This document shows, piece by piece, positions 4,928 to 63,406 of a stretch of DNA of 64,000 nt. The notes under the pieces were generated by a model. It saw only the letters and a program-made list of their open reading frames with translations, did not search any database and was not told the origin of the DNA. The stretch's first letter is position 1; each line of letters begins with the position of its first letter. The position numbers and the translations under genes were made by a program. Location of the stretch: contig NC_087440.1 of NCBI RefSeq assembly GCF_036321535.1, positions 29,202,001 to 29,266,000 on the forward strand. Reading direction: 5' to 3'. The stretch is from Camelus dromedarius. Lineage: Eukaryota.

Positions 4928-5863
4928 TCAGCAAAATTTGATATAATGTTTTTGTTTGCTCAGTCTTTTTATGGCTGCCTTTATATCTTTGTTCCTTAAT
5001 GTATATATAATGGGATTTAAGACAGGGGTAATAGCAAAGTCAGCAATGAACAGATATTTGTCAATTGATGATCTGGGGAAAGGCCATACATAGAGAAACA
5101 TGCATGAAGTGAAAAAAAGAACCACCACAGTGATATGAGCTGACAAAGTGACAAATGCCTTGGATAAATCTCCCAAAGAACGTTTCCAGACAGTGACCAA
5201 AATGAAGATATAAGAAAGGATTAGCAGGAAGAAGGTGCTCATGCTCATGAAGCCACTGTTGGCAGCAACAATGAACTCAAACTTGACTCCATCTGTGCAC
5301 GCAAGTTTTATGATCCTGGGAAAGTCACAATAAAAGCTGTCCACTTTGTTAGGACCACAAAAGGGCAAGTTTATAATGAAAACAAACTGAGACATAGCAT
5401 GGATCACCCCAGTTACCCAGCCAGTGAGTACAAATGAAACACATATTTTAGGGTTCATGATGTTCAAGTAGTGAAGAGGCTTGCAGATTGCCGTGTACCT
5501 GTCAAATGCCATGGCTATGAGTAACACCATCTCCACTCCTCCCATGATGTGGATGAAGCATATTTGTGTCATACAACCTTGGAAAGAGATTATCTTGTAT
5601 CCATTTAAAAGGTCTGTAATCATCTTGGGCACTGTGGTAGAGGCAACGCCCACATCAATAAAAGACAAGTTGGCAAGCAGGAAGTACATAGGAGAATGTA
5701 AATGAGAATCAAAAATTACCAAAAACAAAATGAAGAGATTTCCCAGGATGATCCCCAAATAGATGAAGGAGAATATCAGTGTGAGAAAAACTTTGGTTTC
5801 CCAAGAACCAGAGAGTCCCAGCAATACAAACTCAGAAACCACTGAATCATTTGGTCCATCCAT
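4928..5863 (-). CDS. OR#1: olfactory receptor family 4 (OR4F/OR4G-like), 311 aa, intact
   Basis: N-glycosylation sequon NDS, GN in TM1, [52 protein letters not shown]. The TM7 Asp (ADF) resembles OR4F-type receptors. Splice acceptor CTTTCTCTCCTAAG ends at 5897. Confidence 0.96.
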
Positions 5864-12334: not shown

Positions 12335-13500
12335 TTTTTTTGTATACATAATATATATAATTAACTTTTAATGTATTTTTACTGAACTATAGTCAGCTTA
12401 CAATGTTGTGTCAATTTCTGGTGTACAGCACAATGCTTCAGTCATATAGGAAAATACATATATTCATTTTCATATTCTTTTTCACCATAAGTTACTAGAA
12501 GATACTGAATATAGTTCCCTGTGCTATATAGTATAAACTATTTATCTATTTTATATATATTAGTTAGTATCTGCAAATCTCATACTCCCAGTTTATCCCT
12601 TCCCACCCAATTCGTCCCTGGTAACCATAAGTTTGTTTTCTATGTCCGTGAGTCTGGTTCCGTTTTGTAAATAAGTTCATTTGTCTTTTATTTTTTTAAG
12701 ATTACACATATAAGTGATATCATATGGTATTTTTCTTTCTCTTTCTGGCTGACTTCACATAGAATGACATTCTCCAGCTCTATCCATATTGCTGCAAATG
12801 GTATTATTTTATTATTTTTCATGGCTGAGTAAGTGTTCCATTGTATAAATATACCATAGCTTCTTTATCCAGTCATTTGTCAACATTTAGGTTGTTTCTA
12901 TGTCTTGGCTATTGTAAATAATGCTGCTATAAACACTGGGGTGCATGTATCTTTTTGAATTAAGGTTNNNNNNNNNNNNNNNNNNNNNNNNNNNNNNNNN
13001 NNNNNNNNNNNNNNNNNNNNNNNNNNNNNNNNNNNNNNNNNNNNNNNNNNNNNNNNNNNNNNNNNNNNNNNNNNNNNNNNNNNNNNNNNNNNNNNNNNNG
13101 TCCCCTTTTCTCCACAGCCTCTCCAGCATTTATTGTTTATGGAGTTCTGAATGATGGCCATTTTGACTGGTGTGAGGTGATACCTCATTGTGGTTTGATA
13201 TGCATTTCTCTGATAATTTGTGATATTGAGCATTTTTTCATGTGCCTTACTGGCCATTTTTATGTCTTCATTGGAGAATTGCTTGTTTAGATCTTTTGCT
13301 CATTTTTGGATTGGATTGTTTGTTTTTGTTACTAAGTTATATGAGTTGTTTATATACTCTGGAAATTAAGCCCTTGTTAGTCACATCATTTGCAAATATC
13401 TTCCATTCTGTAGGCTGTCATTTTGTTTTGCTTATGGTTTCTTTTGCTGTGCAAAAGCTTGTAAGTTTAATTAGGTCCCATTTATTAATTTTTGCTTTAT
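12335..13500 (-). mobile_element. Young L1 3' UTR plus ORF2 C-terminus (contains N-run 12968-13099)
   Basis: Tail ACTGAACTATAGTCAGCTTACAATGTTGTGTCAATTTCTGG. The minus-strand ORF encodes L1 ORF2 C-terminal motifs (MRYHLTPVKMAII...KCWRGCGEKG). Confidence 0.92.
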
Positions 13501-14426: not shown

Positions 14427-15338
14427 CTAACATCGCAGTCTCTGGATGGCGTTTTTAATCTCTTTGTTTCTTAACGTGTAAATGGCTGGATTTAGGACCG
14501 GTGTGATGACTGCATAAAATACAGCAAGAAACTTGTCCACCCAGGTGATATGGAGTGGCCACAGATAGATGAAGATGCAGGGTCCAAAGAATAACACCAC
14601 CACTGTGATGTGGGCAGTGCAGGTGGAGAGAGCCTTGGATGCCCCTTCTTTAGAGTGAAGGCGGACAGTAAGCAGGATATAAAAGTAAGAGAGTAGCAAC
14701 AGAATGAAGCAGATGGTTGCCAGTACCCCACTGTCAGCATTTATCAACATTTCTAGACTATAAGTATCCATACAGGCCAGCCTGATCACCAGTGGAATAT
14801 CACAGAAAAAGCTATCCAGTTCCCTGCGTCCACAGAAGGGCAGCTTTATAATTAGAGCTAGTTGGCTTATTGAATGCACAAAGCCAGTGATCCATGATGT
14901 CATCACTAGCCCAGTGCACTTTTGCCTGTCCATGATGCTGGAGTAATGGAGTGGCTTGCAGATGGCCACATAACGGTCATAGGCCATTGACACAAGCAGT
15001 ATCATCTCACCCCCTCCAAAGAAATGTCCAAAAAAAATCTGACACATGCAGCCTCCAAAGGAGATGGTCTTATTTTCTTTGAGAAAGTCTGTGATCATTT
15101 TTGGGGTGATTACTGAGGAAAGACAGAAGTCAATGAACGAAAGATTGGCTAACAAGAAGTACATAGGGGAGTGAAGATGAAGATCAGCAGTAATTAGGAG
15201 CGCAATGAAGATGTTGCCTAAAATGGTGATCAAGTAAAGTGAAGAAAATATCAGCAGGAGGAAGGCCTGGAGCTCCCATGAATTACAAAGTCCAAGAATA
15301 ATAAATTCAGACACCACAGTCTGGTTTACTTCTTCCAT
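14427..15338 (-). CDS. OR#2: olfactory receptor family 4 (OR4K-like), 303 aa, short C-tail
   Basis: NQT sequon, [52 protein letters not shown]. Acceptor TTTTTCTTCAG ends at 15364. Confidence 0.95.
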   Translation of the reverse strand: MEEVNQTVVSEFIILGLCNSWELQAFLLLIFSSLYLITILGNIFIALLITADLHLHSPMYFLLANLSFIDFCLSSVITPKMITDFLKENKTISFGGCMCQIFFGHFFGGGEMILLVSMAYDRYVAICKPLHYSSIMDRQKCTGLVMTSWITGFVHSISQLALIIKLPFCGRRELDSFFCDIPLVIRLACMDTYSLEMLINADSGVLATICFILLLLSYFYILLTVRLHSKEGASKALSTCTAHITVVVLFFGPCIFIYLWPLHITWVDKFLAVFYAVITPVLNPAIYTLRNKEIKNAIQRLRC

Positions 15339-26275: not shown

Positions 26276-26461
26276 CTAGGTAGGTTAGCTGAAGGAATAA
26301 ATTAATGCATGAATTTTTCAAGACATCTTAATGGCTGTTAGTAAAGATTGCTTTTCTTAAAACTAGATTTAAATAAAAGCGTATATCTGTTTATTTTAAT
26401 TTTGATAAATCCTTTGGTTATGATTTTGTTTTTGATCTTTAGGTATCACCAGACAAAGCCA

Positions 26462-27397
26462 ATGTATGAAGCAAATTACTCTTTGGTGTCTGAATTTGTG
26501 TTCCTGGGACTTTCTAACTCTAGACCTGTGCAGCATTTCCTCCTTGCCTTCTCTACAGTGTTATATGTAACAATTCTTCTAGGAAACCTCCTTGTTGTGT
26601 TTGCAGTGACCTTTGACCCTCATCTACATTCCCCCATGTACTTCCTTTTAGCCAACCTCTCATTTATTGATTTGTGTTTTTCCACCTTAACTGTTCCAAA
26701 GATGATCTCTGACCTGTACTCTGGGCACAAAATCATATCCTTCCAAGGGTGTGTCATCCAGATATTTGTCCTTCACATCCTGGGTGGATCTGAGATGGTG
26801 CTGCTTACTGCCATGGCCTTAGACCGATATGTGGCCATATGTAAGCCCCTGCACTACCTGACCATCATGAGCCCACGGATGTGCCTTCTGCTTCTGTGTG
26901 GTGCTTGGACTACTGGCCTCATTCACTCAGTGGTCCAGTTAGCTTTTGTTGTCCATCTGCCTTTTTGTGGTCCTAATGAAATAGATAGCTTTTACTGTGA
27001 CCTACCTTGGTTTATCAAACTTGCCTGCATAGACACCTATAGAATGGAATTCCTGGTAACTGCCAACAGTGGGTTCATTTCTGTGGGCACTTTCTTCTTG
27101 TTGATTGTCTCTTATGTTTTCATCCTGGTCACCATATGGAAACGTTCTTCAGGTGGTTTGTGTAAGGCCCTCTCTACTCTGTCAGCTCACATCACTGTGG
27201 TGGTTTTGTTCTTTGGACCATGCATCTTTGTTTACATGTGGCCATTTCCCACGGTGCCAGTGGATAAGTTTCTTGCCATTTTGGACTTTATGATTACGCC
27301 CATCCTGAATCCTGCCATTTACACATTGAGGAACAAGGACATGAAGATGGCAATGAGGCGATTGAGTAGTCAGCTCCTGAGTTGGAGGATGATCTAA
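26462..27397 (+). CDS. OR#3: olfactory receptor family 4 (OR4F/OR4G-like), 311 aa, intact
   Basis: The likely start is ATG 26462 (MYEANYS, NYS sequon), 19 nt after the acceptor TTTTGATCTTTAG (AG 26441-26442). The 38 extra codons in the ORF track mostly overlap the intron end. Motifs: [43 protein letters not shown]. Confidence 0.95.
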
Positions 27398-30689: not shown

Positions 30690-32150
30690 GACTTCCTAGC
30701 TGCCTTTCATATTTTTAAAAACATTCTTATCACCCCTAAAAACTTTGTACCTGTTAAGCATTCAAACCCAAATTTCTTCTTCTTCCATTTCCTGGCAACC
30801 ATTAATCCATTTTCTGTCTTTATGGATTTGACTATTTTGGTCAAATTTTTTTGGTCAAAAATTCCATAGAAATGGAATCTTATATTATNNNNNNNNNNNN
30901 NNNNNNNNNNNNNNNNNNNNNNNNNNNNNNNNNNNNNNNNNNNNNNNNNNNNNNNNNNNNNNNNNNNNNNNNNNNNNNNNNNNNNNNNNNNNNNNNNNNN
31001 NNNNNNNNNNNNNNNNNNNNNNNNNNNNNNNNNNNNNNNNNNNNNNNNNNNNNNNNNNNNNNNNNNNTTCTTGTGAATAGTGTTACTAAAAACATCTGTG
31101 TACAATTTTTTGTTTCAACACCTGTTTTCAGTTCTCTTGAGTGGAACTTCTGGGTCATATGGTAACTTTATGTTCAACATATTGAGACACCATCAAACTG
31201 TTTTTCACAGTGCCTATAAAATTTTACATTCTCTCTAATACTGTATGAGCAATCCAATTTCTCCATATTCTTATCCACACTTGATGTTTTATTTCATTAG
31301 TTTTTATTATGGCCAATCTACTGGGTGTGAAATTATATATCATTGTCCTTTTAATTTTCATTCCTGTAATGACTAATGAGGTTGAGCAGCTTTTCATGTG
31401 CTTGTTGGTTGGCCATTTGTATATCTTCTCGAGTGGAATGTTTATTCAAATCCTTCTCTCATGTTTAAATTGGGTTGTTTGTCTTTTTATTGCTGAGTTT
31501 TAATAGTTCTCTATATATTTTGATTACCATGCCTGTTTAGTTTTCTAAGGCTGCAATAAAAATTTACTACAAACTTGGTGGTTTAAAACAACATGAATTT
31601 ATTCTCTCACAGTTTTGGAGGCTAGAATTGGAAATCAATGTGCTGGCAGGGCTAAGCTCCCTCCTAAGGCTCTAGGGGAGAATCCTTCCTTGTCACTTCC
31701 GATTGCTGGTGACTCTAGGTGTTTCCTGGTTTGTGTCTACATAACTCCAACCTCTACTTCATCTCCATGTGGCTTCACCTCTGTATCCTTGTATTCTCCT
31801 GTTTCTTATTAGGACATTTATGTTTCTTATTAGGACATTTATTATTCAGGTTCTCCAGGATGATCTCAAGATCCTTATTACATTTGCAAAGACCCTTTTT
31901 CCAAATAAGGTTTCATTAACAGTTTCAGGAGTTAGGATGTAGAACTATCTTTTTGAGGGCCTTCATTCAACCCACTACAAGACCCTTATCAGATATGTGA
32001 TTTAGAAATATTTTCTCTCATCTGTACATTTTCTTTTTACTCTCTTGATTGAATCCCTTGACACACATAAGATTTTAGTTTTGATGAAGTCCAATTTATC
32101 TGTTTTTCCTTTTGTTAGGTGTACTTTGGTGTTATTTTAAAGAAACCATT
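30690..32150 (-). mobile_element. Old L1 (L1MB-like) 3' region, interrupted by an MLT1 LTR and N-run 30889-31067
   Basis: Antisense L1 (CCTGGCAACCATTAATCC...GTTGAGCAGCTTTTCATGTGC...TTTGATGAAGTCCAATTTATC); the L1 sequence resumes at 31980. Confidence 0.85.
31534..31979 (-). mobile_element. MLT1-type (ERVL-MaLR) solo LTR
   Basis: TGTTTAGTTTTCTAAGGCTGC...GGTGGTTTAAAACAACATGAATTTATTCTCTCACAGTTTTGGAGGC...TTCAACCCACTACA is the reverse complement of an MLT1 LTR. Confidence 0.88.
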
Positions 32151-39156: not shown

Positions 39157-40077
39157 TTACATATCTCCATTGGAATGCATGTAGTAGCTTCTGAATCTCT
39201 TTATAGCATTTTTTATCTCTTTATTTGTCAGGTTATAAATGGCTGGATTTAGGAGAGGTGTAAAGACAGAGTAAAACACAACAAGAAATTTGTCCACCCA
39301 GGTGATGCTGAGTGGCCACACATAGATGAAGATGCAGGGCCCAAAGAAGAGCACCACCACTGTGATGTGGGCAGTGCAGGTAGAGAGGGCCCTGGAAGCA
39401 CCAGTTTTAGAGCTTTGGCGAACAGCGAGAAGAATATATGTGTAGGGTATCAGCAATACTATAAAGCAGGTTATGGCTAGAAGCCCACTGTCAGCATTCA
39501 TCAATACTCCCAAGTTATAGGAATCTATGCAGGCAAGCTTGATTATCAGTGATACATCACAGAAGAAGCTGTCAATTTCCCTGGGGCCACAGAAGGGCAG
39601 TCGCATAATCACAACCATTTGACTCATGGCATGCACAAAGCCAATGGTCCAGGAAGTCGCCACGAGCCCAATGCACTTTTGCAGGTTCATAATGGTCGAA
39701 TAGTGGAGTGGCTTGCAGATGGCCACGTAGTGGTCATAGGCCATTACCACCAATAGCACCATCTCACCTCCTCCAGCAAAATGCACAAAGAGGACCTGGC
39801 ACATGCAGCCTCCAAAGGAAGTAGTCTTGTTCTCCCTGACAAAGTCTGTAATCATCTTAGGGGTGGTGACTGAAGAAAGCCACGTGTCAACAAAGGACAG
39901 GTTGACCAACAAGAAGTACGTGGGGGAATGCAGGTGGGCGTCAATGATGACTAAGACCATGATGGCAATATTTTCAGATACAATGATCAGGTAAAGCATA
40001 AAAAATATCAATAGGAGTAAGACCTGCATATCCCAGCAAAGTCCCAGAAGCACTACAGACAGATTTCCTTTATCCAT
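39157..40077 (-). pseudogene. OR#4: OR4K-like paralog of OR#2; open frame (306 aa) but probably non-functional
   Basis: OR identity is certain. Relative to OR#2 it has in-frame deletions of 4 and 2 N-terminal residues and the changes GN>EN, PMY>PTY, DRY>DHY and YTLRN>YNLTN. Pseudogene status is inferred. Confidence 0.65.
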
Positions 40078-42599
40078 TTTATTCAGTGTGTCCTCTAAAA
40101 TAACCTACAGAGAAGGATAGACTGTTAGTCTCACAAGTGATGGGAAAGGGCACTTAACTTTTTAAAATTCAGTTGAAATTCTATCTCAGTGAAGTTTAAA
40201 TTTCATTGAAAATTAGCACCTGTATTTGAAAGTGCTAAAAGTTAATTAGCACTTTTTTTGTCAAGATAAACCTTTCCAGTATTAATTTTCTGTAATTAAT
40301 TTTGTACCTGTTAAAAATAGAGACATAGAAGATAGCTAATAGCAAAAGCAGAATTTCAACTGTGCTTGAGTGCAGAAATTGCTAAAAGGTGAATGTGTAC
40401 ATTGCTGAGGAACAGTTTACCAATAAGAAATCATAACTACTTTTAAAATCAGTTTTGAAGTTGTTAATATTTTATAATACTGGTAGACTATATTACTTGA
40501 TTAAAATTAATCAATATTTGGGATAACTTGTAGAGTAATGTGGACTTTTAAATTAGTCAAATCTGGTCTGAACTCTATTACTTGTTGACCTTGTGAGCTT
40601 GACTTAAATATTTCTGTTTCCATTTCCTCATCTGTATAAAGAGAATACTCAATATAATAGACTTGTCTTCAAGCCAGAAAATATACAGAAAGCAATGAAA
40701 GTTTTCTGGTACTCAGTGCATGAATAATAAATATTAGATATTTCTTTATTCATTAAAATGCAACTTCAAGCTCTGCAGTTCCCAGAGCTTACTGGCAACA
40801 ATCTTAGTTAACGGCCACACATCTTCTGTAAGTACAGTATATGGAATCAATTTTCTTTAAAACACGTACTGCTTATATTTTTTCTAAATTAATAAGCAGA
40901 TGCTTAGCAGCCCTATAGGATGTAGGTGGGAGGGAAATAGCAGACTTGCTTCTTGCTTTCCATGCGCTTAACACCTTTTTCACCTTTCACATCTGCTTTT
41001 GTCTAGGAGGGGTTTAATATTTTAAGAAACCTACAAGAGGCAATAGCACATTTTCTTAAAGTACCTTTGGAATCTTGTAACTCTGGGTGAATTTTCACAA
41101 AAGGAGGTACTGATAACTTTGGGATTAGGGACATTGAAAAGTTAGAGAAAGACAAATAGAGGTTTTTTTTTTTTTTTGAGTATTAAAATATAGCCACACA
41201 TTTTTCATTCCGGTCTAGATGCAATGTCCTTCTATTAATTTTTAAATAAGAGTAATCCTGAAACTGTGAGATTATCAACATTTATAATTGTACAAAGAGA
41301 AACTTGGACATGAGAAAATTTAATAGATTGCCTGAGCTATACACTGGTAAGTTATACAGAGATACTCTACCTTCCTTTCTCTACCCAAAACTGGCTTCCT
41401 TTTTTCCTCAGGTTATGAGTTTTAATACTATTAAATCCTATTAATCCTACAGTAACTGAGTTTCATATCACTTCTCACTGGATATCTATTATTTTATTTC
41501 TATCTCTATGCTAAATGTTATCTTATTATGCATTACTCGCTCTGATATAAAATACTTTATCTTCTTAAATTGTAAGGCAAGAATCATTTAGCAGGATAGC
41601 TGGGAGTTGCTAATTATCAGGTAGCTGTGATAATAATCAAAGAACCATGATCTCCTGAGGCAGACCTGGGAGCATCTCTGAGGCACAGCATTATGGTGGT
41701 GTGTACACTGTTGTTAAAGAGACCATAGAAATTCCAGTAGAATAGAATAGAATAGGAGCAGAAAACCCATAAATTATCTCTTTAAAGGTTAGAAGCTAAA
41801 CAAGGCATAATCATCTTCAACCATAGGCATGCATGAAACAGAGGCATATAAATATTAAAAAAATTATTTTTAAGAAGAGAGTCACAGAGAATATGAGATA
41901 ACTTACTATACACAAGTTTTCTCTAGGACCGGATAAATTTTACTCTCTCTTCTGATAGATGCTTGAGATAACATCCACTGTTGGGTAGAGACAGTATCTA
42001 TGGAAGAAGTTTCCGTCAGCTTGATATATATTCATCACTGGAGGGAATCCCTTGTGTGAAGTTTTCCTATTTTCTGTTTTGGGCAGAACAAGAATCATGA
42101 AAATAATTTACATTGGACATCTCTTGGGGACTTCTTTGTTAAGAGTAATAATTTTTGCATATTCTGAAAATCAGAAAAGGGAGACAAGCAAAATCGTATG
42201 TAAAGCAGCTAAGTATTAAACATCAGTGAAGTTTTAAATTGTTTTTCATTTAACCTGTAAGTACTAAGAAGATGTCTTCTGCAGTCTTAATCTCTAACTA
42301 GATCTAAATAATCAGATTCAATTAAGGTTTAGTTCCAGTTTCTAGAGCAGTCATATCCTAACCAGTGTGATATACAACCACCAAAAGAAAACCCTGCCAT
42401 GAATGGCATGCTCTACTGCACGTCTAATGTTCTATAAACAGACAGGTAATCTTGATTGGCTGACTGATTTCTTTCAACATTATCTATGATTATTTGAGGT
42501 CCTGATAGGCAGTGAGTGTCAAATTATTAAGATATCTTTAGATTAAAAAAAGAACATTGATGTTAGAGTAAAATACATTCATTTTGGCCTTTTAGATTT

Positions 42600-44504: not shown

Positions 44505-47500
44505 ATTCTTTTTTCCTACAGTATTTTTTATTGAAATATAATCAGTTACAACGTGTAAATTTCTGCTGTGCAGCATAATGTCCCAGTCATGCACATACAT
44601 GTATATATTAGTTTTCACATTCTTTTTCATTAAAGGTTATTACAAGATACTGAATATAGTTCCCTGTGCTATACAGAAGAAATTTGTTTTTTCTCTATTT
44701 TTATGTATAGTGGTTAATATTTACAAATCTCAAACTCCCAAATTTATCCCTTCCCACCGTCTTTCCCCCGGTAACCGTAAGATTGTTTACTGTGTCTGCG
44801 AGTTTGCTTCTGCTTTGTAGATAAGTTCATTAGTGTCCTCTTCTCTTTTCTTTCTTTTCTTTCCTTTCTTTCCTTTCTTCTTTCTTTCTTTTTCCACATA
44901 TAAGTGATATCATATGGTATTTTTCTTTCTCTCTCTGGCTTACTTCACTTAGAATGACGATCTCCAGTTCCATCCATGTTGCTGCAAGTGGCATTATTTT
45001 ATTCTTTTTTTAAGACTGAGTAGTATTCCATTGTATAAATATGTAACAGCTTTATCCAGTCATCTGTTGAGGACATTTAGGTTGCTTCCATGTCTTGATG
45101 TCTGTATATAGTGCTGCTATAAACATTGGGGTGCTTGTATCTTTTCGAATTGGAGTTCCTCTGGATATATGCCCAGGAGTGGGATTACTGGATCATATGG
45201 TAAGTCTATTTAGTTTTTTGGGGAATCTACATACTGTTTTCCATAATGGCTGCACCAGACTGCATTCCAGCTAGTAGTGTAAGAGAGTTCCCTTTTCTCT
45301 CGAACCTCTCCAGCATTTATGGTNNNNNNNNNNNNNNNNNNNNNNNNNNNNNNNNNNNNNNNNNNNNNNNNNNNNNNNNNNNNNNNNNNNNNNNNNNNNN
45401 NNNNNNNNNNNNNNNNNNNNNNNNNNNNNNNNNNNNNNNNNNNNNNNNNNNNNNNNNNNNNNNNNNNNNNNNNNNNNNNCTTCTGCCAATGTTTGGATTG
45501 GGTTTTTTTTTTTTATTAAGTTATATGAGTTGTTTATATATTCTGGAAACTAAGCCCTTTTTAGTCACATCATTTGCAAGTATTATCTTCCATTCTGAAG
45601 GTTGTCATTTTGTTTTGCTTGTGATTTCCTTTGCTGTGCAAAAGCTTATAAGTTTAATTAGGTCCCATTTGTTTATTTTTGCTTTTATTTCTATTGCCTG
45701 GGTAGCTGCCCTAGGCAAACATTGCTAAGATTTATGTCAGAGAATGTTTTGCCTATGTTTTCTTCTAGGAGATTTGTTGTGTCTTGTCTTATATTTAAGT
45801 CTTTAAGCCATTCTAATTTTATTTTTGTGTATAGAGTAAGAGAGTATTCAATCTCAAAATACTAACTAGAAAAAATCCTGAGGAGAATCATAAAAGTAAT
45901 TTTTACTGTTTGTTGTATAAAATTGGAAAATTAAAATCAAATAATATTTATTGATTTAGGGTTTTTTGAAAATTTACAAGCATATTTATAAAATATATCC
46001 AGCTAAATGTACGTATAGAAGGAATCAAATCTGATATGGTAGATGAAATCATTCATTATGACAACTTGTACATATGATCAAATATGAAATATCTTTAAAA
46101 ATCTATATTTCTACTCAGACACAGGTAAAACTAAGTTAGAGTTAGAAAAAGAAAACGGTCCTTTCTAACATAAAGCTCACATGGAAAATTTAAATGAGTG
46201 GCATTTATTATGCAAATAACATTGAACTGAAAAGAAATGAAAGACAATTGAGTAAAACTGGATCAGACAAGGTTTGGCTTCTCTAGCAGGAGCTTGAGAA
46301 TGCGATGGGTGGCCTGTGATTGGGGAACCTAGCCTTTTCTGTGCCATTCGTGTTACATGCTGCTGTCCAGTTTTCCCAACACCACTTGCTGAAGAGACTT
46401 TTCTCCATTGTATATTCTTGCCCCCTTTGTCAAAGATTAGTTGATTGTATGTCTGTGGGTTTATTTCTGGGCTCTCTATTCTGTTCCATTGATCCATGTG
46501 TCTGTTTTTTTTGCTAATACCACGCTGTTTGATTACTGTTAGCTCTGTAGTATTGTCTGAAGTGTTGGAGAGTTATTCTTCCAGCTTCATTCTTTTTCTT
46601 CAGTATTGCTTTGGCAATTATGGGACTTTTGTGATTCCATGTAAAGTTTAGAATTATATGTTCTACTTCTATAAAAAAAAAAAGTCCTGGGTAATTTGAT
46701 ACTGATCTCATTAAATCTGTAGATTGCCTTGGGCAGAATGGCCATTTTAAGTATTTTGATTCTTCCAATCCAAGATCGTGGGATATCTTTCCATTTCTTT
46801 AAATAATCTTTAATTTCTTTAATCAGTGTTTTGTAGTTCTCCATGTATAAGTCTTTCACCTCCTTGGTCAGATTTATTCCTAAGTATTTTATTGATTTCA
46901 ATGCAATTTTAAAAGGGATTGTTTCTTTACTTTCTTTTCCTGCTATTTCATTGTTGGTGTAAAGAAATGCAACTAATTTCTGTATGTTAATCTTGTATCC
47001 TGCTACCTTGCCAAATTGTCTTATCAGCTCAAAAGTGTGGTGCTTTTAGGGTGTCTATATATGATACCATGTCATCTGCATGTAGTGACAATTTTACCTC
47101 TTCTGTTNNNNNNNNNNNNNNNNNNNNNNNNNNNNNNNNNNNNNNNNNNNNNNNNNNNNNNNNNNNNNNNNNNNNNNNNNNNNNNNNNNNNNNNNNNNNN
47201 NNNNNNNNNNNNNNNNNNNNNNNNNNNNNNNNNNNNNGTTTTTCACCATTGAGTATTATGCTGGCTGTGGGTTTGTCATAAATAGCTTTTATTATGTTAA
47301 AATATGTTCCATCTCTACCCACTTTGGTAGGAGTTTTTAATCATAAATTGGTGTTGAATTTTATCAAATGCTTTTTCTGCATCTGTTGAGATGATCATGT
47401 GATTTTTGTCCTTTTTTTTNNNNNNNNNNNNNNNNNNNNNNNNNNNNNNNNNNNNNNNNNNNNNNNNNNNNNNNNNNNNNNNNNNNNNNNNNNNNNNNNN

Positions 47501-49440
47501 NNNNNNNNNNNNNNNNNNNNNNNNNNNNNNNNNNNNNNNNNNNNNNNNNNNNNNNNNNNNNATCTATGTTCATCAATGGATGAGACTGGCCTGTAATTTT
47601 CTTTTTTGGTTGTGTCTTTGGCTTTGGTATCAGGGTGATGGTGGCTTCATAGAATAAGTTTAGGAGTATTCCCTCCTTTTCAGTCTTTGGAAGAAATTGA
47701 GAAGGACCAGTATGAATTTTTCTTTGTATGTTTGGTAGAATTCCCTAGTGAAGCCATCTAGTCTTGGACTTTTGTTTGTAGGGAGGTTTTTTTTGGTTTT
47801 TTTTTAGTTGTTAATTCTGTTTCATTTCTAGTAATTGGTCTTTTCAAGTGGTCTGTTTCTTCTTGATTCACTCTTGGTGGACTGTATGTTTCCATAGATT
47901 TGTCAGTTTCTTTCAGGTTGTCCAGTTTGTTTCCAAATAGTTGTTCATAGTATTCTCTTATGGTTTTTTGTATTTCTGTAGTATTGGTTATAACTTCTTC
48001 ATTTTCTTTTCTTATTTTGTTTATTTGTGTTCTCTCTCTTTTCTTCTTGGTGAGCTTGGCCAGAGGTTTCTCAATTTTGTTTTCTCTTTTAAAAGATCAT
48101 CTCTTGATTTAATTGATATTTTTCTATTTTTTTTAAATCTCTATTTTATTTATTTCCTCCCTGATCTGTATTTTTTTTCTTCCTTCTGCTAACTTTAGGT
48201 TTTGTTTGGTCTTCTTTTTCTAATTCTTTTTGGTTATAGGTTAGATTGTTTATTTGAGATTTTTCTTGTTTTTTGAGGAAGACCTGTATTGCTGTGAACT
48301 TCTCTCTTAGGACATTTTCCTGCATCCCATAGATTTTGTGTGGTTGTGTTTTCATTATCATTCTTCTCAAAGTATTTTTTAATTTCTTTGATTTCATTGT
48401 TGACCTGTTGTTTTTTAGTAGCATGTTGTTTAGTCTCCGTGTAGTCGTTTTTTGTTTTTGTTTTTGTTTTTTTTTTCTCATTTGTCTTTTTATGGTTGAT
48501 TTGTAGTTTCATGGCATTGTGGTCAGAAAAGATGCTTGAAATAATGTCTATTCTCTTAAATTTGTTGAGACTTCTTTTAAGCCTGAGTATGTGATCTATC
48601 CTAGAAAATGTTCCATGCACACTTGAAAAGGATGTATATTTGTTTTTCTGGGGATGTAATGTCCTAAAAATATCAACCAATTCAAACTGTTCTATTGTGC
48701 CATTTAGTATCTCCATTGATTTTCTGTCTGGAAGATCTGTCCAATAATGTTAATGGGATGTTGAAATCTCCTACTGTGATTGTGTTCCCATCAATTTCTC
48801 TCTTTATGTCTGTTAGTATTTGCTTTATATATTTAAGTGCTCTTTTATTGAGTGCAGATATGTTAACGAGTATAATATCATCATCTTGTATTGCTCCTTT
48901 AATCATTATATAGTGTCCTTCTTTATTTATGGTCTCTGATTTAAAGTCTTATTTCGTCTGATGTGAATATTGCTACTTTCATTTTCTTGTCCTTTCCATT
49001 TGTGTGAAATATCTTATTCAGTCCTCCCACTTTTGACCTATATGTGTCCCTCACCCTAAAGTGGGTCTCTTGCATGCAGCATATTGTAGGCTTTTGTTTT
49101 ATTATTCAATCTGCTGCTCTGTGTCTTTTGATTGGAGCGTTTAGTCCATTGATATTTGTAGTAATTACTGATAGATGTATCTTTATTGCCATTTTGAATT
49201 TAGTTTTCCACTTGATTTGATATTTCCTCTTTGTTGCTATCTTTTTCTTTTTCTTTCTTTTTTTTCTTTTGTGTGTGTGTGTGTGTGTGTGTGTGGTTTG
49301 ATAATTTTTTTTAGTAGTTTCTTGGTTTCTTTTTGGCTTTTGTGACTCTTGTGTATTTTTGATTTTTTGTTACCCTGCTTTTTAAGTATATGAACCCATT
49401 TTTATAATTGTTTGCTTTAAACTGATAGTCATATATGTTG
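44505..49440 (-). mobile_element. Long young L1: 3' UTR, disrupted ORF2 (start ATG at 49192) and inter-ORF region
   Basis: Minus-strand endonuclease peptides (VGDFNIPL, TFSRIDHILR, SDHNAMKL), RT peptide LHADDM and [12 protein letters not shown]. Contains three N-runs, frameshifts, a (TG)13 at 49270-49295 and a foreign 506-bp insert. Confidence 0.95.
45848..46353 (+). repeat. 506-bp direct copy of 57879-58388 inserted within L1 ORF2
   Basis: Base-by-base comparison shows 3 substitutions and one 4-nt indel. Confidence 0.97.
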
Positions 49441-50145
49441 GTGCATTATTGTTTATTGCAGTCTCATAATCATCTGTAATTTTGTAATGTTGGTATTTGT
49501 TTTTCCTTTTTCATTTCTCAATTTATTTACTTGACTTCTCTCTTTTTCTTGGTGAGACTTGGTAAAGATTCACTAATTCTGTTTATCTTTTCAAAGAAGC
49601 AACCTTTGTTTCCATTTATCTTTTCTATTATTTTCTTTAGTCTCTATTTCATTTATTTTCATCTGATCTTCATTATTTCCTTCTTCTACTAACATTGGGC
49701 TTTGTTCTTTTTCTAGTTATATTGGTTATCTGAGATTTATTTTTGTTTCTTGAGGTGGCGTGTATAACTATAAACTTCCCTATTAGAACTACTTTTGCTA
49801 CATCCCATAGATTATGTTATATTGTGTTGGTATTTTCATTTGTCTCAAAGTATTTTTTGGTTTTCTATTTGATGTCATCAAAACCCCATTGGTTCTTTAG
49901 TAGCATGTTTAGCTTCCATGTGTTTGTGTTTTTCTCAGTTTTCTTATTGTAATTTATTTCTAGTTTCATACTGTGGTGGTTAGAAAATATGCTTGATATT
50001 ATTTCTATCTTCTTAAATCTATTGAGACTTATTTTGTGGCCTAACATGTGACCTAACCTGGAGAATATTCCATGTATACTTGAAAAGATTGTATATTCTG
50101 CTACATTGTGGTGGGATGTTCTGTTTTTATCTATTAAATTCATTT
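49440..50145 (-). mobile_element. Second L1 endonuclease-region fragment
   Basis: The minus-strand ORF 49865-50143 (IFSRLGHMLGHK...FSNHHSMKLEINY) repeats the EN region seen at ~48400-48700. Confidence 0.85.
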
Positions 50146-52304: not shown

Positions 52305-53500
52305 TGATGTTACATCCTTTTACACCATATATATAAAAATTAACTCAAAATGAATTAAATTCGTAAGTGTAAGAAGTGACACTACAAAACTTGTAGAAGG
52401 AAACAGGAAAAAACTTTCAAGATGCTGATTTTGGCATTTATTGGTCAGATATGACACCAAAAGCACAGGCAGCAAATGCAAAAATAAGACAAAGGGGACT
52501 ACATCAATGTTAAAAACTTCTGTGTAGCAAAGGAAACAATCAACAGAGTGAAAACGCAACCTACAGAATGAAAGAAAATATTTGCAAATCATATATTTTA
52601 TAAGGAGTTAACATCAGAATATAGTAAAAGAAAAACTCTTGCAACTTAAAATACAAAACCAAATAACCCAGTGAAAAATGGGTTAAGGACTTAAATAGAT
52701 ATTTATTCAAAGACAATATAGAAATAGCCAGCAAGCATGTGAAAAAATGTTCAGCATTACAAATCATCAGAGAAATGCAAATCGAAATCACAATGAGATG
52801 TTACCGTATACCTCTTAGGATGGCCTCTGTCAAAACAAAATCCAGAAAACAACAAGCACTGGTGAGGATGTGAAGAACTGGAGAAATTGGAGCCCTTTGC
52901 ACTGTTAATGAGAACATAAAATGGTGGTGCAGCTGTTCTGGAAAACAGTATGGAGTTGCCTCAAGAATTTAAAAAATTGAATTACCATATGATACAAGTA
53001 GTTGACTTCTGAGTATATAAACANNNNNNNNNNNNNNNNNNNNNNNNNNNNNNNNNNNNNNNNNNNNNNNNNNNNNNNNNNNNNNNNNNNNNNNNNNNNN
53101 NNNNNNNNNNNNNNNNNNNNNNNNNNNNNNNNNNNNNNNNNNNNNNNNNNNNNNNNNNNNNNNNNNNNNNNNNNNNNNNNNNNNNNNNNNNNNNNNNNNN
53201 NNNNNNNNNNGAATTTTGAGAAGATTATTCTAAGTGAAATAAACCAGTCACAACAAGATAAATACTACACGATCCACTTATATATGGTATCTAAAGTAGT
53301 CAAACCCTTAGCAACAGAAAGTAGACTGGTAGTTGCCAAGGACTAGGGGGAAGTGAAAAGAGCACTTGTACAGTGAGTACAGAGGTTCAGTTTTGCAAGA
53401 TGAAAAAGTTCTAGAGATCTGTTGCACAACAAAATACATATAGTTAACCCTATTGTACACTTAAAAATTATTAAGATATTATTCTTTACCACATTAAAAA
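52305..53500 (+). mobile_element. L1 (L1MA/MB-like) ORF2 C-terminus and 3' UTR, with N-run 53024-53210
   Basis: ACACCATATATAAAAATTAACTCAAAATG...GGACTACATCAA...GAAATGCAAATCGAAATCACAATGAG...TTGTACACTTAAAAAT. Confidence 0.9.
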
Positions 53501-54902: not shown

Positions 54903-55844
54903 CTAGAAGGTCTGTCTGGAGCTGACGTGTTGGGTCCTCAGTCTACTCATGGCTGCTTTCATCTCCTGATTCCTCAGAGTGTAGATAATGGGGTTCAGTA
55001 AGGGTGTGATAACTGAATAAAACACAGAAAGAAATTTATCCACTGAAAAGCTACTAAACGGCCAAGCATAAATGAAAATGCACGGCCCAAAGAATAGAGT
55101 GACCACGGTAATATGAGCAGACAATGTGGACAGAGCCTTGGAGAGGCCACCTGAGGATCGACGTTGGACAGTTACCAGAATGACAATGTAGGAAATGAGC
55201 AACAATATGAAGCAGATGAAAGACAACAGTCCACTGTCAGCGATTACTAGCAACTCCAGAACATAGGTCTCAGTGCAGGCAAGCTTTAGAACTAAAGGAA
55301 GGTCACAAAAAATACTGTCCACTACATTGGGGCCACAGAAAGGCAAAGTGATTGTAAAAACCATCTGGCTCATCGTATGCACAAAACCAATAGCCCAAGA
55401 CAACAGCACAGAGCCTGTGAGTACCCGGCGGTTCATGATGGTCGTGTAGTGAAGAGGTTTGCATATTGCAATGTACCGATCAACAGCCATAACTATGAGA
55501 AGAGTCATCTCACTGCCCCCTAAAAAGTGAAGGAAGAACATCTGAGCCATACAGCCCCACAGAGAAATAATTTTATTCTCCCTGAGAAAATCTGTGACCA
55601 TCTTAGGGGTTGTGATGGTAGAAATAGACATATCAAGAAAGGAGAGATTACCAAGGAGGAAGTACATTGGTGTGGAGTGCAGATGGGAGTCAAAGGTTAT
55701 GGTGACCACAATGAGAAGGTTTCCTGCCATAATTGCTGCATATGCCAACAAAAATATGAAAAAAAAGATAATTTCAAGCTCCCGAGTGTTGGTGAGTCCT
55801 AACAAAACAAACTCAGATATCTTTGAGCTATTCACCATTTTCAT
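54903..55844 (-). CDS. OR#5: olfactory receptor family 4 (OR4L/OR4K13-like), 313 aa, intact
   Basis: NSS sequon, [53 protein letters not shown]. Acceptor CCTTTTCCAG ends at 55891. Confidence 0.96.
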   Translation of the reverse strand: MKMVNSSKISEFVLLGLTNTRELEIIFFFIFLLAYAAIMAGNLLIVVTITFDSHLHSTPMYFLLGNLSFLDMSISTITTPKMVTDFLRENKIISLWGCMAQMFFLHFLGGSEMTLLIVMAVDRYIAICKPLHYTTIMNRRVLTGSVLLSWAIGFVHTMSQMVFTITLPFCGPNVVDSIFCDLPLVLKLACTETYVLELLVIADSGLLSFICFILLLISYIVILVTVQRRSSGGLSKALSTLSAHITVVTLFFGPCIFIYAWPFSSFSVDKFLSVFYSVITPLLNPIIYTLRNQEMKAAMSRLRTQHVSSRQTF

Positions 55845-57878
55845 CTAGTCTATGTAGGAGTTTTCAGAAATTCTTTAAAATGAAGATAATCTGGAAAAGG
55901 TGACAATGTAGTCTGTAGTAGTTTTGAAGATATGGTCATATAGAAAGTAGTACTTGATTCCTATAGAAAGAGAGATGGACATTTTTGAAAAATAGATTTA
56001 ATTGATTAATGCAAGCACATTACTTGTATACACATTCATATTATTGCATTTATTTTCAGACAGAAAGGCACAAAAGACGGAAAATTTATTGTATAATTTT
56101 GTAAATCTAGTTTGCAGCCATCGATTTTGTCTCCAGATTCATTTGTTTCTATCAGGAGTTCATGAATTCATGAACCATGAGTTCAGTGGGTCAATGACTA
56201 AAAGAGTCAAATGGCTATCAGTCATGAGTTGGTTCAAGTGGATAGGAATATATCGTGTAACTTTTTGGTGCCTAGGATTCAATCTTTAACCTTTTCTACT
56301 TCCCTAATTTGAAATATTCAGATAAGTTCATATGAATTGAATTACATACCCACTCAGCAAATTACTTTAGGGTACTGTCTTCTATTAGCTATATTATATT
56401 CTCACTCCTCCCTTTCATCCCAAAGAAATATACCAATGATTTCACTTATTCCTGAAGTTTAAGCTGCCTACAGTCTGTCATATGCTCTTACCTCCCCAAA
56501 ATTATAGTAAAATAAGCTTCCTAAGAAGTTACTGAACAAAAACATAAATATTTCTCAGTGTCCAGGTTTTTTTCTTCCTTTCTCCCTTTCTTCTCCTTCC
56601 TTTCCTCCCTTTTTCCNNNNNNNNNNNNNNNNNNNNNNNNNNNNNNNNNNNNNNNNNNNNNNNNNNNNNNNNNNNNNNNNNNNNNNNNNNNNNNNNNNNN
56701 NNNNNNNNNNNNNNNNNNNNNNNNNNNNNNNNNNNNNNNNNNNNNNNNNNATTTCTTAAAAATTTTTTTTCAATAGTGTTCTGTGTTCCATTCTTTGGTT
56801 CCTGAATAAAACTACTGACCTCTACTTTTTTGCCTATTTTCCTGAATCAGTTGTTGCTGGAATCCTGGCTGGAGTTTTCTTTCTTGCCCCTTTGCATTCA
56901 GGGTGTAGATGCTCTCTGATCAACCACCAAATCTTTTACAAGTAGTGTTTATGTTTCCTTGGCTCCTGAGTACTTACATTTTTTTGGTAAGCTTTGCTTT
57001 CCTCTAACTTTTCATACTTGTGTGCAGACTGACTCTTGACAGTTATCCTGGCTCATACATCCTTGATACCTGCACTCTATGTTTTTCCACGTTGAGCTGG
57101 CACTGTTGGCTCACTTTTAGCTACTTTTTCATTATGATTTAGATCTTTTGGTCTCAGCTTTCTGTTTCTTTTTCCTTAAAAAAACAAAACAAACTATTAA
57201 TGGTACACATCAGCCACAAAGACACACATATAGAATCACACACGTGCACACAGGCACTTATACCACATTCTAGTTCTGGAGTACCAGGATGGAATGTAGA
57301 GAATCTCGTCTGATTTTTTTTTTTTTTTGCTTTATAGTTCATGAAATATTCAGAAGTTATTGTTTAGCCCAATTATCAGAATTAAAAAAACAAACAAACA
57401 AACAACTGAACCAAGAATCAAGATTCAACTAGTCCTGGCCTCATCATTTACTAGGGAAATATACTCTTAACTCTTTTCAACATTGATTTATTTTCTATAA
57501 AAATAAAATAATAGCTACTCTTCAACCTCCCAGATTGTTATAACTATAAAGGGTAACATATATGGAATATATTTGTATATTTCATTGTACACATAGATGC
57601 TATGTATGTATGTGCATTAACAAAATTTTATCTTTAACATGATCTCATTTTCTGGTGATTATAAGGATACCTAAACCAAAAAGGACCACTTAAGCCTTTA
57701 CTATGGAAAACCTGGTAAAGAAGACAGTGTTAATGAAAATATTATTTTTAGTCAATATGATATAATTTCCTAGTTGTCTTCTTTATAAGAAATTATTGTC
57801 ATCACATTGGCGTTGTATTTCATGTAGTAATTGAGTCTACATACAAGTTATGAAATTATTTTCAAAATTATGCAGTCC

Positions 57879-58388
57879 TCAATCTCAAAATACTAACTAG
57901 AAAAAATCCTGAGGAGAATCATAAAAGTAATTTTTACTGTTTGTTGTATAAAATTGGAAAATTAAAATCAAATAATATTTATTGATTTAGGGTTTTTTGA
58001 AAATTTACAAGCATATTTATAAAATATATCCAGCTAAATGTACGTATAGAAGGAATCAAATCTGATATGGTAGATGAAATCATTCATTATGACAATTTGT
58101 AAATATGATCAAATATGAAATATCTTTAAAAATCTATATTTCTACTCAGACACAGGTAAAACTAAGTTAGAGTTAGAAAAAGAAAACGGTCCTTTCTAAC
58201 ATAAAGCTCACATGGAAAATTTAAATGTTTGAGTGGCATTTATTATGCAAATAACATTGAACTGAAAAGAAATGAAAGACAATTGAGTAAAACTGGATCA
58301 GACAAGGTTTGGCTTCTCTAGCAGGAGCTTGAGAATGCGATGGGTGGCCTGTGATTGGGGAACCTAGCCTTTTCTGTGCCGTTCGTGT
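57879..58388 (+). repeat. Donor copy of the 506-bp segment duplicated at 45848-46353
   Basis: Embedded in continuous non-L1 sequence on both sides, so this is the likely source. Confidence 0.95.
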
Positions 58389-59536
58389 GACTAAATGAAG
58401 AAAACTTATTCAGTCCTTTTCAACTGTGGTGCTTGCTTGAAAGAAAAAAGCTTTAGAATGTTCAAAACTGTGTCTATATTCAGTAGTAAACTCTTTTCTA
58501 TACATTTTCACAAAAGCACTTTAACAGTGTATGTGAAAATATGTATCTGGTAGTTCTTTTGAAAAAAATATAGGCTATGAAGTTTCTATTGATATTGAGG
58601 TTTTTTTTTAAATAATTTTTTTCTCATAAGAGTGTTAAGCTATTCATGGATTAGATAACCCATGGGCAATATTCTCTTATCACAAAAAATATTTGGAACG
58701 TGAAAAATCAGACTTGCTGCCAAAATAACCATTATAAATATTTTCCTAATTGAAAAATAAACTTGTATATTTGCTAGAAAAATATTCAACACTATAAGTG
58801 CACAAAGGATTTTATTCTTGTATATTGATTAACTTTAAAATATTAAAATAAGTGGTAGAAAAGGGCTAGTGGCTTTAGAAAAATAGGAAATTATCCTTGG
58901 GTTGCACAATTACCAAAACAAGTATGTCAGCAGTATGATTAGACAACTGTATTGAATAAAAGGTCGTATCACTTCAATGAAGAAAATAAATGTAGGCTGG
59001 AGGGGAAAATTAAAAATATATATATTAATTTAAATTGATCACTTATCTCAGCATTCCATGTTTTCTGAGTTGAAATAAATACTCAATGTATGAAAGTAAA
59101 AACATAGATAAGTAAATTAACATAAAATAAAACAAGTCAATGTTTTCCATTTTCTTTATCTGAGATTTTTATTAGATTACATTTCAGACTTCTCACAGAT
59201 GCTAAATGTAGCCAAGGATGACACTAATTTTTCCATTTTTATACCATATTCTAAATTATTTCATTTTTCTCTCATAGGGATTAAATGAACCCAAGTTTAT
59301 ATTCTAAAAATACAAATTAAAATTACAAAACTGACCTCTCAGATCAGGAATGTCAGTGATATTTATTTATCAATCACAGACTGGCTCTTCTTCTTACTTA
59401 AACTAGATACATTTGTCCAGATGGTATCTGACTCACATTGTCTTGTACTGTTGCTCTCATGATCAGAATAGTATGGTTATCATTCATTTCTAAGTTTCTT
59501 ATAGAGTCTCTTCTTTTATTAAAGGATACAATTTCT

Positions 59537-62464: not shown

Positions 62465-63406
62465 TTAGTGGGTGAGCCAAGAAACCATATGCTGCCTGCT
62501 CAGTCTCTTCATAGCTGCCTTCATTTCCTGATTCCTCAGTGTATAAATAATTGGATTAAGGAAAGGGGTGATTATAGAGTAAAATATGGAAAAAAACTTA
62601 TCTACAGAATAGCTATTAAACGGGAAAGCATAGATGAAGATAGCAGGACCAAAGAAGAGAGTGACCACAGTGATGTGAGCAGATAGTGTGGACAGAGCCT
62701 TGGAGGATGCGCTGAAGGAGTGTTGCCGGATGGTGACCAGCATGAGAATGTAGGACATGAGCAAGAGGAGGAAGCAGCCCAGGGACAGGAGTCCACTGTT
62801 CATAGCCACCAAGAGCTGTAGGGTGTAGGTCTCAGTGCAGGCCAGCTTGATGACCAGGGGAAGGTCACAGAAGAAGCTGTCCATGACATTGGGGCCGCAG
62901 AAGGGCAAACCCACTGTGAAAACCATCTGGCTCGTGGTATGCATGAGCCCAACTGCCCACGAGAGCAGCAGTAACCCAGTGAGCACCTTGTGACTCATGA
63001 TGGTCTTGTAGTGCAGAGGTCTGCATATGGCAGCATACCTGTCGATGGCCATAACTATCAGAAGAGACATCTCTCCACCTCCAAAGAAGTGCATAAAAAA
63101 CATCTGAGTCATGCAGCCCCACCAAGAGATGGTCTTGCGTTTTCTGAGGAAGTCTGAAATCACTTTTGGAGTTGCAGCAGAGGAAAGACATAAGTCAAAA
63201 AATGATAAGTTTGCCAAAAAGAAATACATGGGGGAGTGAAGATGGTTATCAAATATCACAGAGATCACAATGAGGAGGTTTCCTACTATGATGGCCACGT
63301 AGATGAGAAAGAAGATTGCAAAAAAGAGTATTTGAATTTCTTGAGAACTGGAAAGTCCCAGCAGGATGAACTCAGAAACACTTGATGTGTTATTCAGGAG
63401 ATCCAT
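62465..63406 (-). CDS. OR#6: olfactory receptor family 4 (OR4K13/OR4L-like), 313 aa, intact
   Basis: NNTS sequon, [54 protein letters not shown]. Acceptor TTTTTCCCCTTTCAG ends at 63440. Confidence 0.96.
   Translation of the reverse strand: MDLLNNTSSVSEFILLGLSSSQEIQILFFAIFFLIYVAIIVGNLLIVISVIFDNHLHSPMYFFLANLSFFDLCLSSAATPKVISDFLRKRKTISWWGCMTQMFFMHFFGGGEMSLLIVMAIDRYAAICRPLHYKTIMSHKVLTGLLLLSWAVGLMHTTSQMVFTVGLPFCGPNVMDSFFCDLPLVIKLACTETYTLQLLVAMNSGLLSLGCFLLLLMSYILMLVTIRQHSFSASSKALSTLSAHITVVTLFFGPAIFIYAFPFNSYSVDKFFSIFYSIITPFLNPIIYTLRNQEMKAAMKRLSRQHMVSWLTH

Follow-up and report, generated by a model that had tools for sequence, protein, structure and literature searches.

Half a kilobase of unique DNA from upstream of an olfactory receptor gene copied into a decayed L1 element 12 kb away in the dromedary genome

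We analyzed a window of 64,000 nucleotides of the Camelus dromedarius genome (contig NC_087440.1, positions 29,202,001 to 29,266,000), to which all coordinates below refer. The window contains six intact open reading frames of olfactory receptors (ORs), recognized by the Pfam 7tm_4 model with E-values from 1e-39 to 1e-50. Those at 4928-5863, 14427-15338 and 62465-63406 lie on the minus strand, as do the two on either side of the insertion described here, OR#4 (39157..40077, E 3.5e-39) and OR#5 (54903..55844, E 2.7e-41). The third frame (26348-27397) is alone on the plus strand; its listed start is a TTG codon well upstream of the receptor domain.

The interval between OR#4 and OR#5, which may be a patchwork of L1s, includes a minus-strand L1 ORF2 that is interrupted at 45848-46353. 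On the side of the insertion that is 3' in the sense of the L1, a remnant at 45692..45847 (minus strand) is 88–93% identical to many L1 copies, reads as ORF2-like in a minus-strand frame and runs on leftward to a run of Ns ending at 45479. The remnant on the 5' side (46354..47107, minus strand) is 88–90% identical to L1 copies and decayed, with frameshifts and stops. The pieces of minus-strand open reading frame to the right of the insert read as ORF2, and the piece at 46590-46901 (minus strand) matched residues 764-844 of human LINE-1 ORF2p in a homology search (E 5.5e-30). ORF2-like text in minus-strand frames thus flanks the insert on the left and on the right; the frames differ and stops are present. 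To judge from its sequence, the host element is a decayed minus-strand L1 that was broken downstream of the reverse-transcriptase region. Within the genome it is 88–93% identical to its closest relatives, and only ~79% identical to the L1 at ~37470, which a preliminary description of the locus had used for comparison.

By eye, an open reading frame at 49865-50143 (minus strand) resembles the endonuclease-region frame of the interrupted L1 at 48234-48716 (minus strand), and this likeness suggests that another L1 fragment lies a short way upstream of the interrupted one. Runs of Ns lie inside the L1 at 45324-45479, 47108-47237 and 47420-47561, and elsewhere in the window at 12968-13099, 30889-31067, 53024-53210 and 56617-56750; their lengths are irregular and in both groups fall between 130 and 187 nt.

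In a local alignment the inserted sequence (45848..46353, plus strand), 506 nt of unique DNA with 30% G+C, corresponds to 57879..58388 on the same strand (510 nt). The copies are 99.4% identical over the aligned bases and differ by three substitutions (insert/source: C/T at 46065, C/A at 46071 and A/G at 46346) and by one 4-nt indel, the nucleotides 58226-58229 (plus strand) of the source being missing from the insert, with the gap between 46194 and 46195. This reproduces the match and the differences given in the preliminary description, whose quoted flanking text also agrees in its letters. A repeat finder returned the same pair of copies as its families D3 and D6. In a search of the whole 2.3-Gb assembly, the segment matched two places only, with E-values of 1.7e-263 and 5.7e-256; the match is therefore far beyond chance, and the segment is not a dispersed repeat. 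The latter had been set out earlier as a test, for which many genomic copies would have been expected in place of the two that were found.

The copy at 58 kb lies 2.0–2.5 kb upstream of OR#5 on the strand of the gene. Single-copy DNA surrounds it, extending leftward for 1128 nt and rightward for ~1100 nt until a repeat is reached near 59510, and 57879-58388 is therefore in its native context. The sequence at 45848-46353, on the other hand, interrupts one decayed minus-strand L1 ORF2. The L1-embedded copy is derived and the 58-kb copy is ancestral. As the donor was left intact, the segment was copied and not cut. Source and insert are separated by 12,031 nt on the same chromosome and are in direct orientation.

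The anatomy of the junctions was resolved by comparison with empty sites: the 80-nt flank on each side of the insert was located in 38 related L1 loci. The two flanks are collinear in 36 of these loci (88–93% identity) and separated by 16 letters, which start with TC and end with T. Because the TC and the T are ambiguous, the target loss at the L1 site, measured against these 36 copies that read straight through, is 13–16 nt, with no duplication. An earlier figure of 12–14 nt came from the L1 at ~37470; the 14 extra letters are indeed present there, and the closer copies correct the loss to 13–16 nt. We also considered two independent L1 fragments around an old duplication remnant, and rejected this arrangement since the flanks are collinear with just 13–16 nt missing.

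At the left junction, the dinucleotide TC (45848..45849) is common to the L1 and the source, as had been described, and at the right junction we additionally found a 1-nt overlap, the T at 46353..46353. When mismatches are allowed, the overlap on the left becomes AGTnnTC (5/7) and that on the right 4/7. There are no filler letters at either junction. The comparison with the 36 related L1 copies revealed a deletion in place of a target-site duplication (TSD), and neither end of the insert carries a poly(A) or poly(T) tail; the lack of both had been recorded before. A TTTT/A target motif is lacking at the insertion site. The insert ends bear neither terminal inverted repeats nor hairpins, and inverted repeats at the breakpoints are unremarkable. 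A dispersed repeat or transposable element, which we also considered, was dismissed on the two genomic copies and on the missing terminal inverted repeats and TSD.

Five of the seven L1 positions that are rare among 35–36 related copies, in a count that covers 156 nt of the left flank, fall within 35 nt of the left junction (45813-45841), and three of them are changes from G to A. The right L1 flank has no rare positions within 70 nt of the junction. The cluster may reflect breakpoint-associated mutation, a weak hint that is not significant allowing for two flanks, or may be subfamily variation.

We searched public sequencing runs for the left junction using the 60 nt centered on it (45819-45878), from which four of the 30 possible 31-mers were sampled. 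Of the 30, two lack specificity for the junction: the first, made up of L1 plus TC, and the last, which lies wholly within the insert. All four sampled 31-mers were found in 20 public runs, representing 14 samples, 9 studies and 3 organism labels. Since at most two of the 30 words are non-specific, each of the 20 runs contains at least two words that span the join. The assembly can derive from no more than one of the 14 samples, and the left junction is therefore real and inherited. Four added runs lacked the junction words, but one of these comes from the same sample as a run in which they occur, so that they are no proof of absence. In a broad search, every run contained 0.70–0.79 of the words, whichever allele it carried, and the alleles were not told apart. 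The right junction is supported by this assembly alone; the open reading frames that cross it (46180-46497 on the minus and 46320-46514 on the plus strand) are absent from protein collections, and a homology search matched neither. The insertion, with its left junction seen in reads, is genuine, inherited and carried by many animals of the three organism labels. It looks shared or fixed across these labels rather than demonstrably polymorphic.

The 99.4% identity of the copies, set against the 88–93% identity of the interrupted L1 to its nearest relatives, indicates that the L1 is much older than the insert. Three substitutions in 506 nt correspond to K ~0.006. Substitution rates are generally taken as 1 to 2.2 × 10^-9 per site per year. 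At this general rate the insertion would be roughly 1.3–3 million years old, with a Poisson range of ~0.3–9 million years. Its presence under three organism labels fits the older end of this range; alternatively, the sharing could be due to lineage sorting or introgression. The event had been called recent; the left junction common to the three labels makes it less recent than supposed.

The substitution clock is unsafe if some of the differences arose during copying. The substitutions at 46065 and 46071 are only 6 nt apart. The one at 46346, 8 nt from the right junction, falls on a CpG of the source and could be ordinary CpG decay in the insert; the gap opposite 58226-58229 looks like a deletion in the insert. 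The clustering of the differences is compatible with error-prone copying and with later decay alike. That all four were made during error-prone copying and not after it is a lesser possibility; if true, they would record the fidelity of repair synthesis.

We consider the insertion to be probably the product of a single event of templated insertion from 12 kb in cis that was independent of TPRT and healed a break or a stalled fork. The junction signature, which comprises a microdeletion and microhomology with no TSD and no poly(A), is such as break repair or template switching, and not TPRT, would leave, in agreement with the preliminary description, which had favored break repair by templated or microhomology-mediated synthesis. 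In outline, a germline break or stalled fork would have occurred inside the already dead minus-strand L1 ORF2, and a 3' end would have primed at the TC of the nearby donor. About 0.5 kb would then have been synthesized on the donor before dissociation, and the copied end rejoined to the other L1 end, 13–16 nt further along. The route, microhomology-primed copying of the SDSA or MMBIR kind, would have been synthesis-dependent end joining or template switching of the MMBIR/FoSTeS type, and the repair product would have passed through the germline to the many animals of three organism labels that now carry it. We infer that the template was DNA rather than RNA: copying from DNA is favored by a donor that is directly oriented and in cis at 12 kb, and by the resumption of the L1 13–16 nt past the point of departure.

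Three other origins of this arrangement have to be weighed. An assembly artefact, with a chimeric read, a collapsed repeat or a haplotype misjoin placing the segment into the L1, might be suspected from the runs of Ns that flank the insert, at a distance of 369 nt on the left and 754 nt on the right, and from a right junction known only from the assembly. It is nevertheless very improbable, given that the left-junction 31-mers recur in 20 independently sequenced runs (14 samples, 3 organism labels), that the copies differ by three substitutions and a 4-nt indel, and that the L1 picks up again after 13–16 nt in an unchanged frame of reference, as one clean event would leave it. The doubt about a misjoin raised in the preliminary description is thereby lifted for the left junction and stays with the right one. 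Transposition can hardly be entertained at all, whether as TPRT by L1 (a class-1 TSIP or a transduction) or through a small transposon as the segment's own mobile element: the region is rich in L1 and the L1 enzyme could work in trans, but there is no TSD, no poly(A) or poly(T), no TTTT/A and no terminal inverted repeat, and the segment has just two genomic copies.

Capture by end joining, in which NHEJ would have sealed a free 0.5-kb DNA fragment, or the cDNA of a local transcript left unspliced, into a double-strand break, is unlikely but of more weight than the other two. It would make the event a class-2 templated sequence insertion as Onozawa and Aplan strictly define it. It would leave the same junctions, namely a microdeletion, 0–2 nt of microhomology, no TSD, no poly(A) and a retained donor (PMC5110952), and the donor, being upstream of an OR gene, could be transcribed. 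Template switching is not the sole fit to the junctions, since microhomologies of 2 nt and 1 nt would equally be expected if a free fragment had simply been end-joined. A directly oriented donor in cis at 12 kb points instead to copying that depends on proximity, whereas experimental templated sequence insertions (TSIs) show no regional preference (PMC5110952). The copy is moreover collinear with genomic DNA, with no splicing and no tail, and transcription of the donor is without support.

Class-2 TSIs and TSIPs resemble the camel insert in that the sequence is templated elsewhere in the genome and inserted at a break with the donor retained, and in their size class of a few hundred nucleotides. 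Their signature of no TSD, no poly(A), microdeletion and microhomology (PMC5110952) is likewise that of the camel insert. Experimental TSIs of 73–414 nt come from distant regions with no regional preference (PMC5110952), whereas the 506 nt of the camel insert are somewhat above this range and have a local donor, 12 kb away on the same strand. Onozawa and Aplan argue that the patches of class-2 TSIs are derived from RNA (PMC5110952); the patch described here is collinear with genomic DNA. With MMBIR/FoSTeS, the insertion shares a switch at microhomology to a nearby template and a return close to the point of departure.

Microhomology-flanked templated insertions (MMB-TIs) studied by Osia et al. 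are inherited as germline variants (PMC8421209), and such events accumulate when no gene is hit (PMC8421209). Those that have been catalogued are short inverted copies of a template within 100 bp (PMC8421209), in contrast to the 506 nt in direct orientation from 12 kb away in the camel; the camel insert further differs from them in its minimal microhomology (2 and 1 nt) and its single switch pair, the only one in the insertion. Products of L1 TPRT (processed pseudogenes, transductions and class-1 TSIPs) are also non-homologous insertions of copied sequence, but the TSD, poly(A) and target motif that belong to them are all missing here. Polymerase-theta end joining (TMEJ) likewise copies DNA beside a break after priming at microhomology. 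Its typical inserts are of a few to a few tens of nucleotides and are copied from within tens of nucleotides of the break. The camel insert exceeds these values, both in its length and in the distance to its template, by one to two orders of magnitude or more.

The insert lies ~5.8 kb upstream of the ATG of OR#4, in the same relative orientation as the source has to OR#5. It had been proposed that the source includes a candidate 5' UTR exon of OR#5 at 58212-58261. On the minus strand a GT donor does follow 58212, at 58211/58210, and is kept in the copy, where the candidate exon corresponds to about 46181-46226, and plausible acceptors precede the ATGs of both OR#4, near 40105, and OR#5, near 55890; a GT donor and acceptor signals are, however, common by chance. 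We found no O/E (EBF) site TCCCNNGGGA within one mismatch in 57879-58388, and homeodomain sites in this interval are below the shuffle expectation (0 vs 2.0 for TAATTA, 1 vs 3.7 for TAATKR), although both are weak tests. Upstream of paralogous ORs, in the window and 10 kb on each side, there is no conserved block similar to the donor, and an Rfam search of the donor gave only a chance-level match (E 0.99). The proposed exon is thus left with its GT donor, and the reading of the copied piece as a promoter or 5' exon appears unsupported, though not refuted. That the segment carries the promoter or the first, non-coding, exon of OR#5, and now gives OR#4 a further start site, seems decidedly doubtful; if it were so, it would mean regulatory shuffling between OR genes by break repair. 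On its sequence, the inserted copy offers no evidence of function, and none is implied.

Templated insertions of this kind have been described in human polymorphism, in disease rearrangements and in cancer, and a fixed case in a dead L1 makes no change in principle. The finding would carry greater weight only if the copied DNA were an active OR promoter or exon. As it stands, it provides a clean, datable natural case of a half-kilobase local templated insertion, in which the empty site can be inferred from related L1 copies and both junctions are resolved to the base, the right one in this assembly only. The insertion may also be of use as a presence/absence marker among close species.
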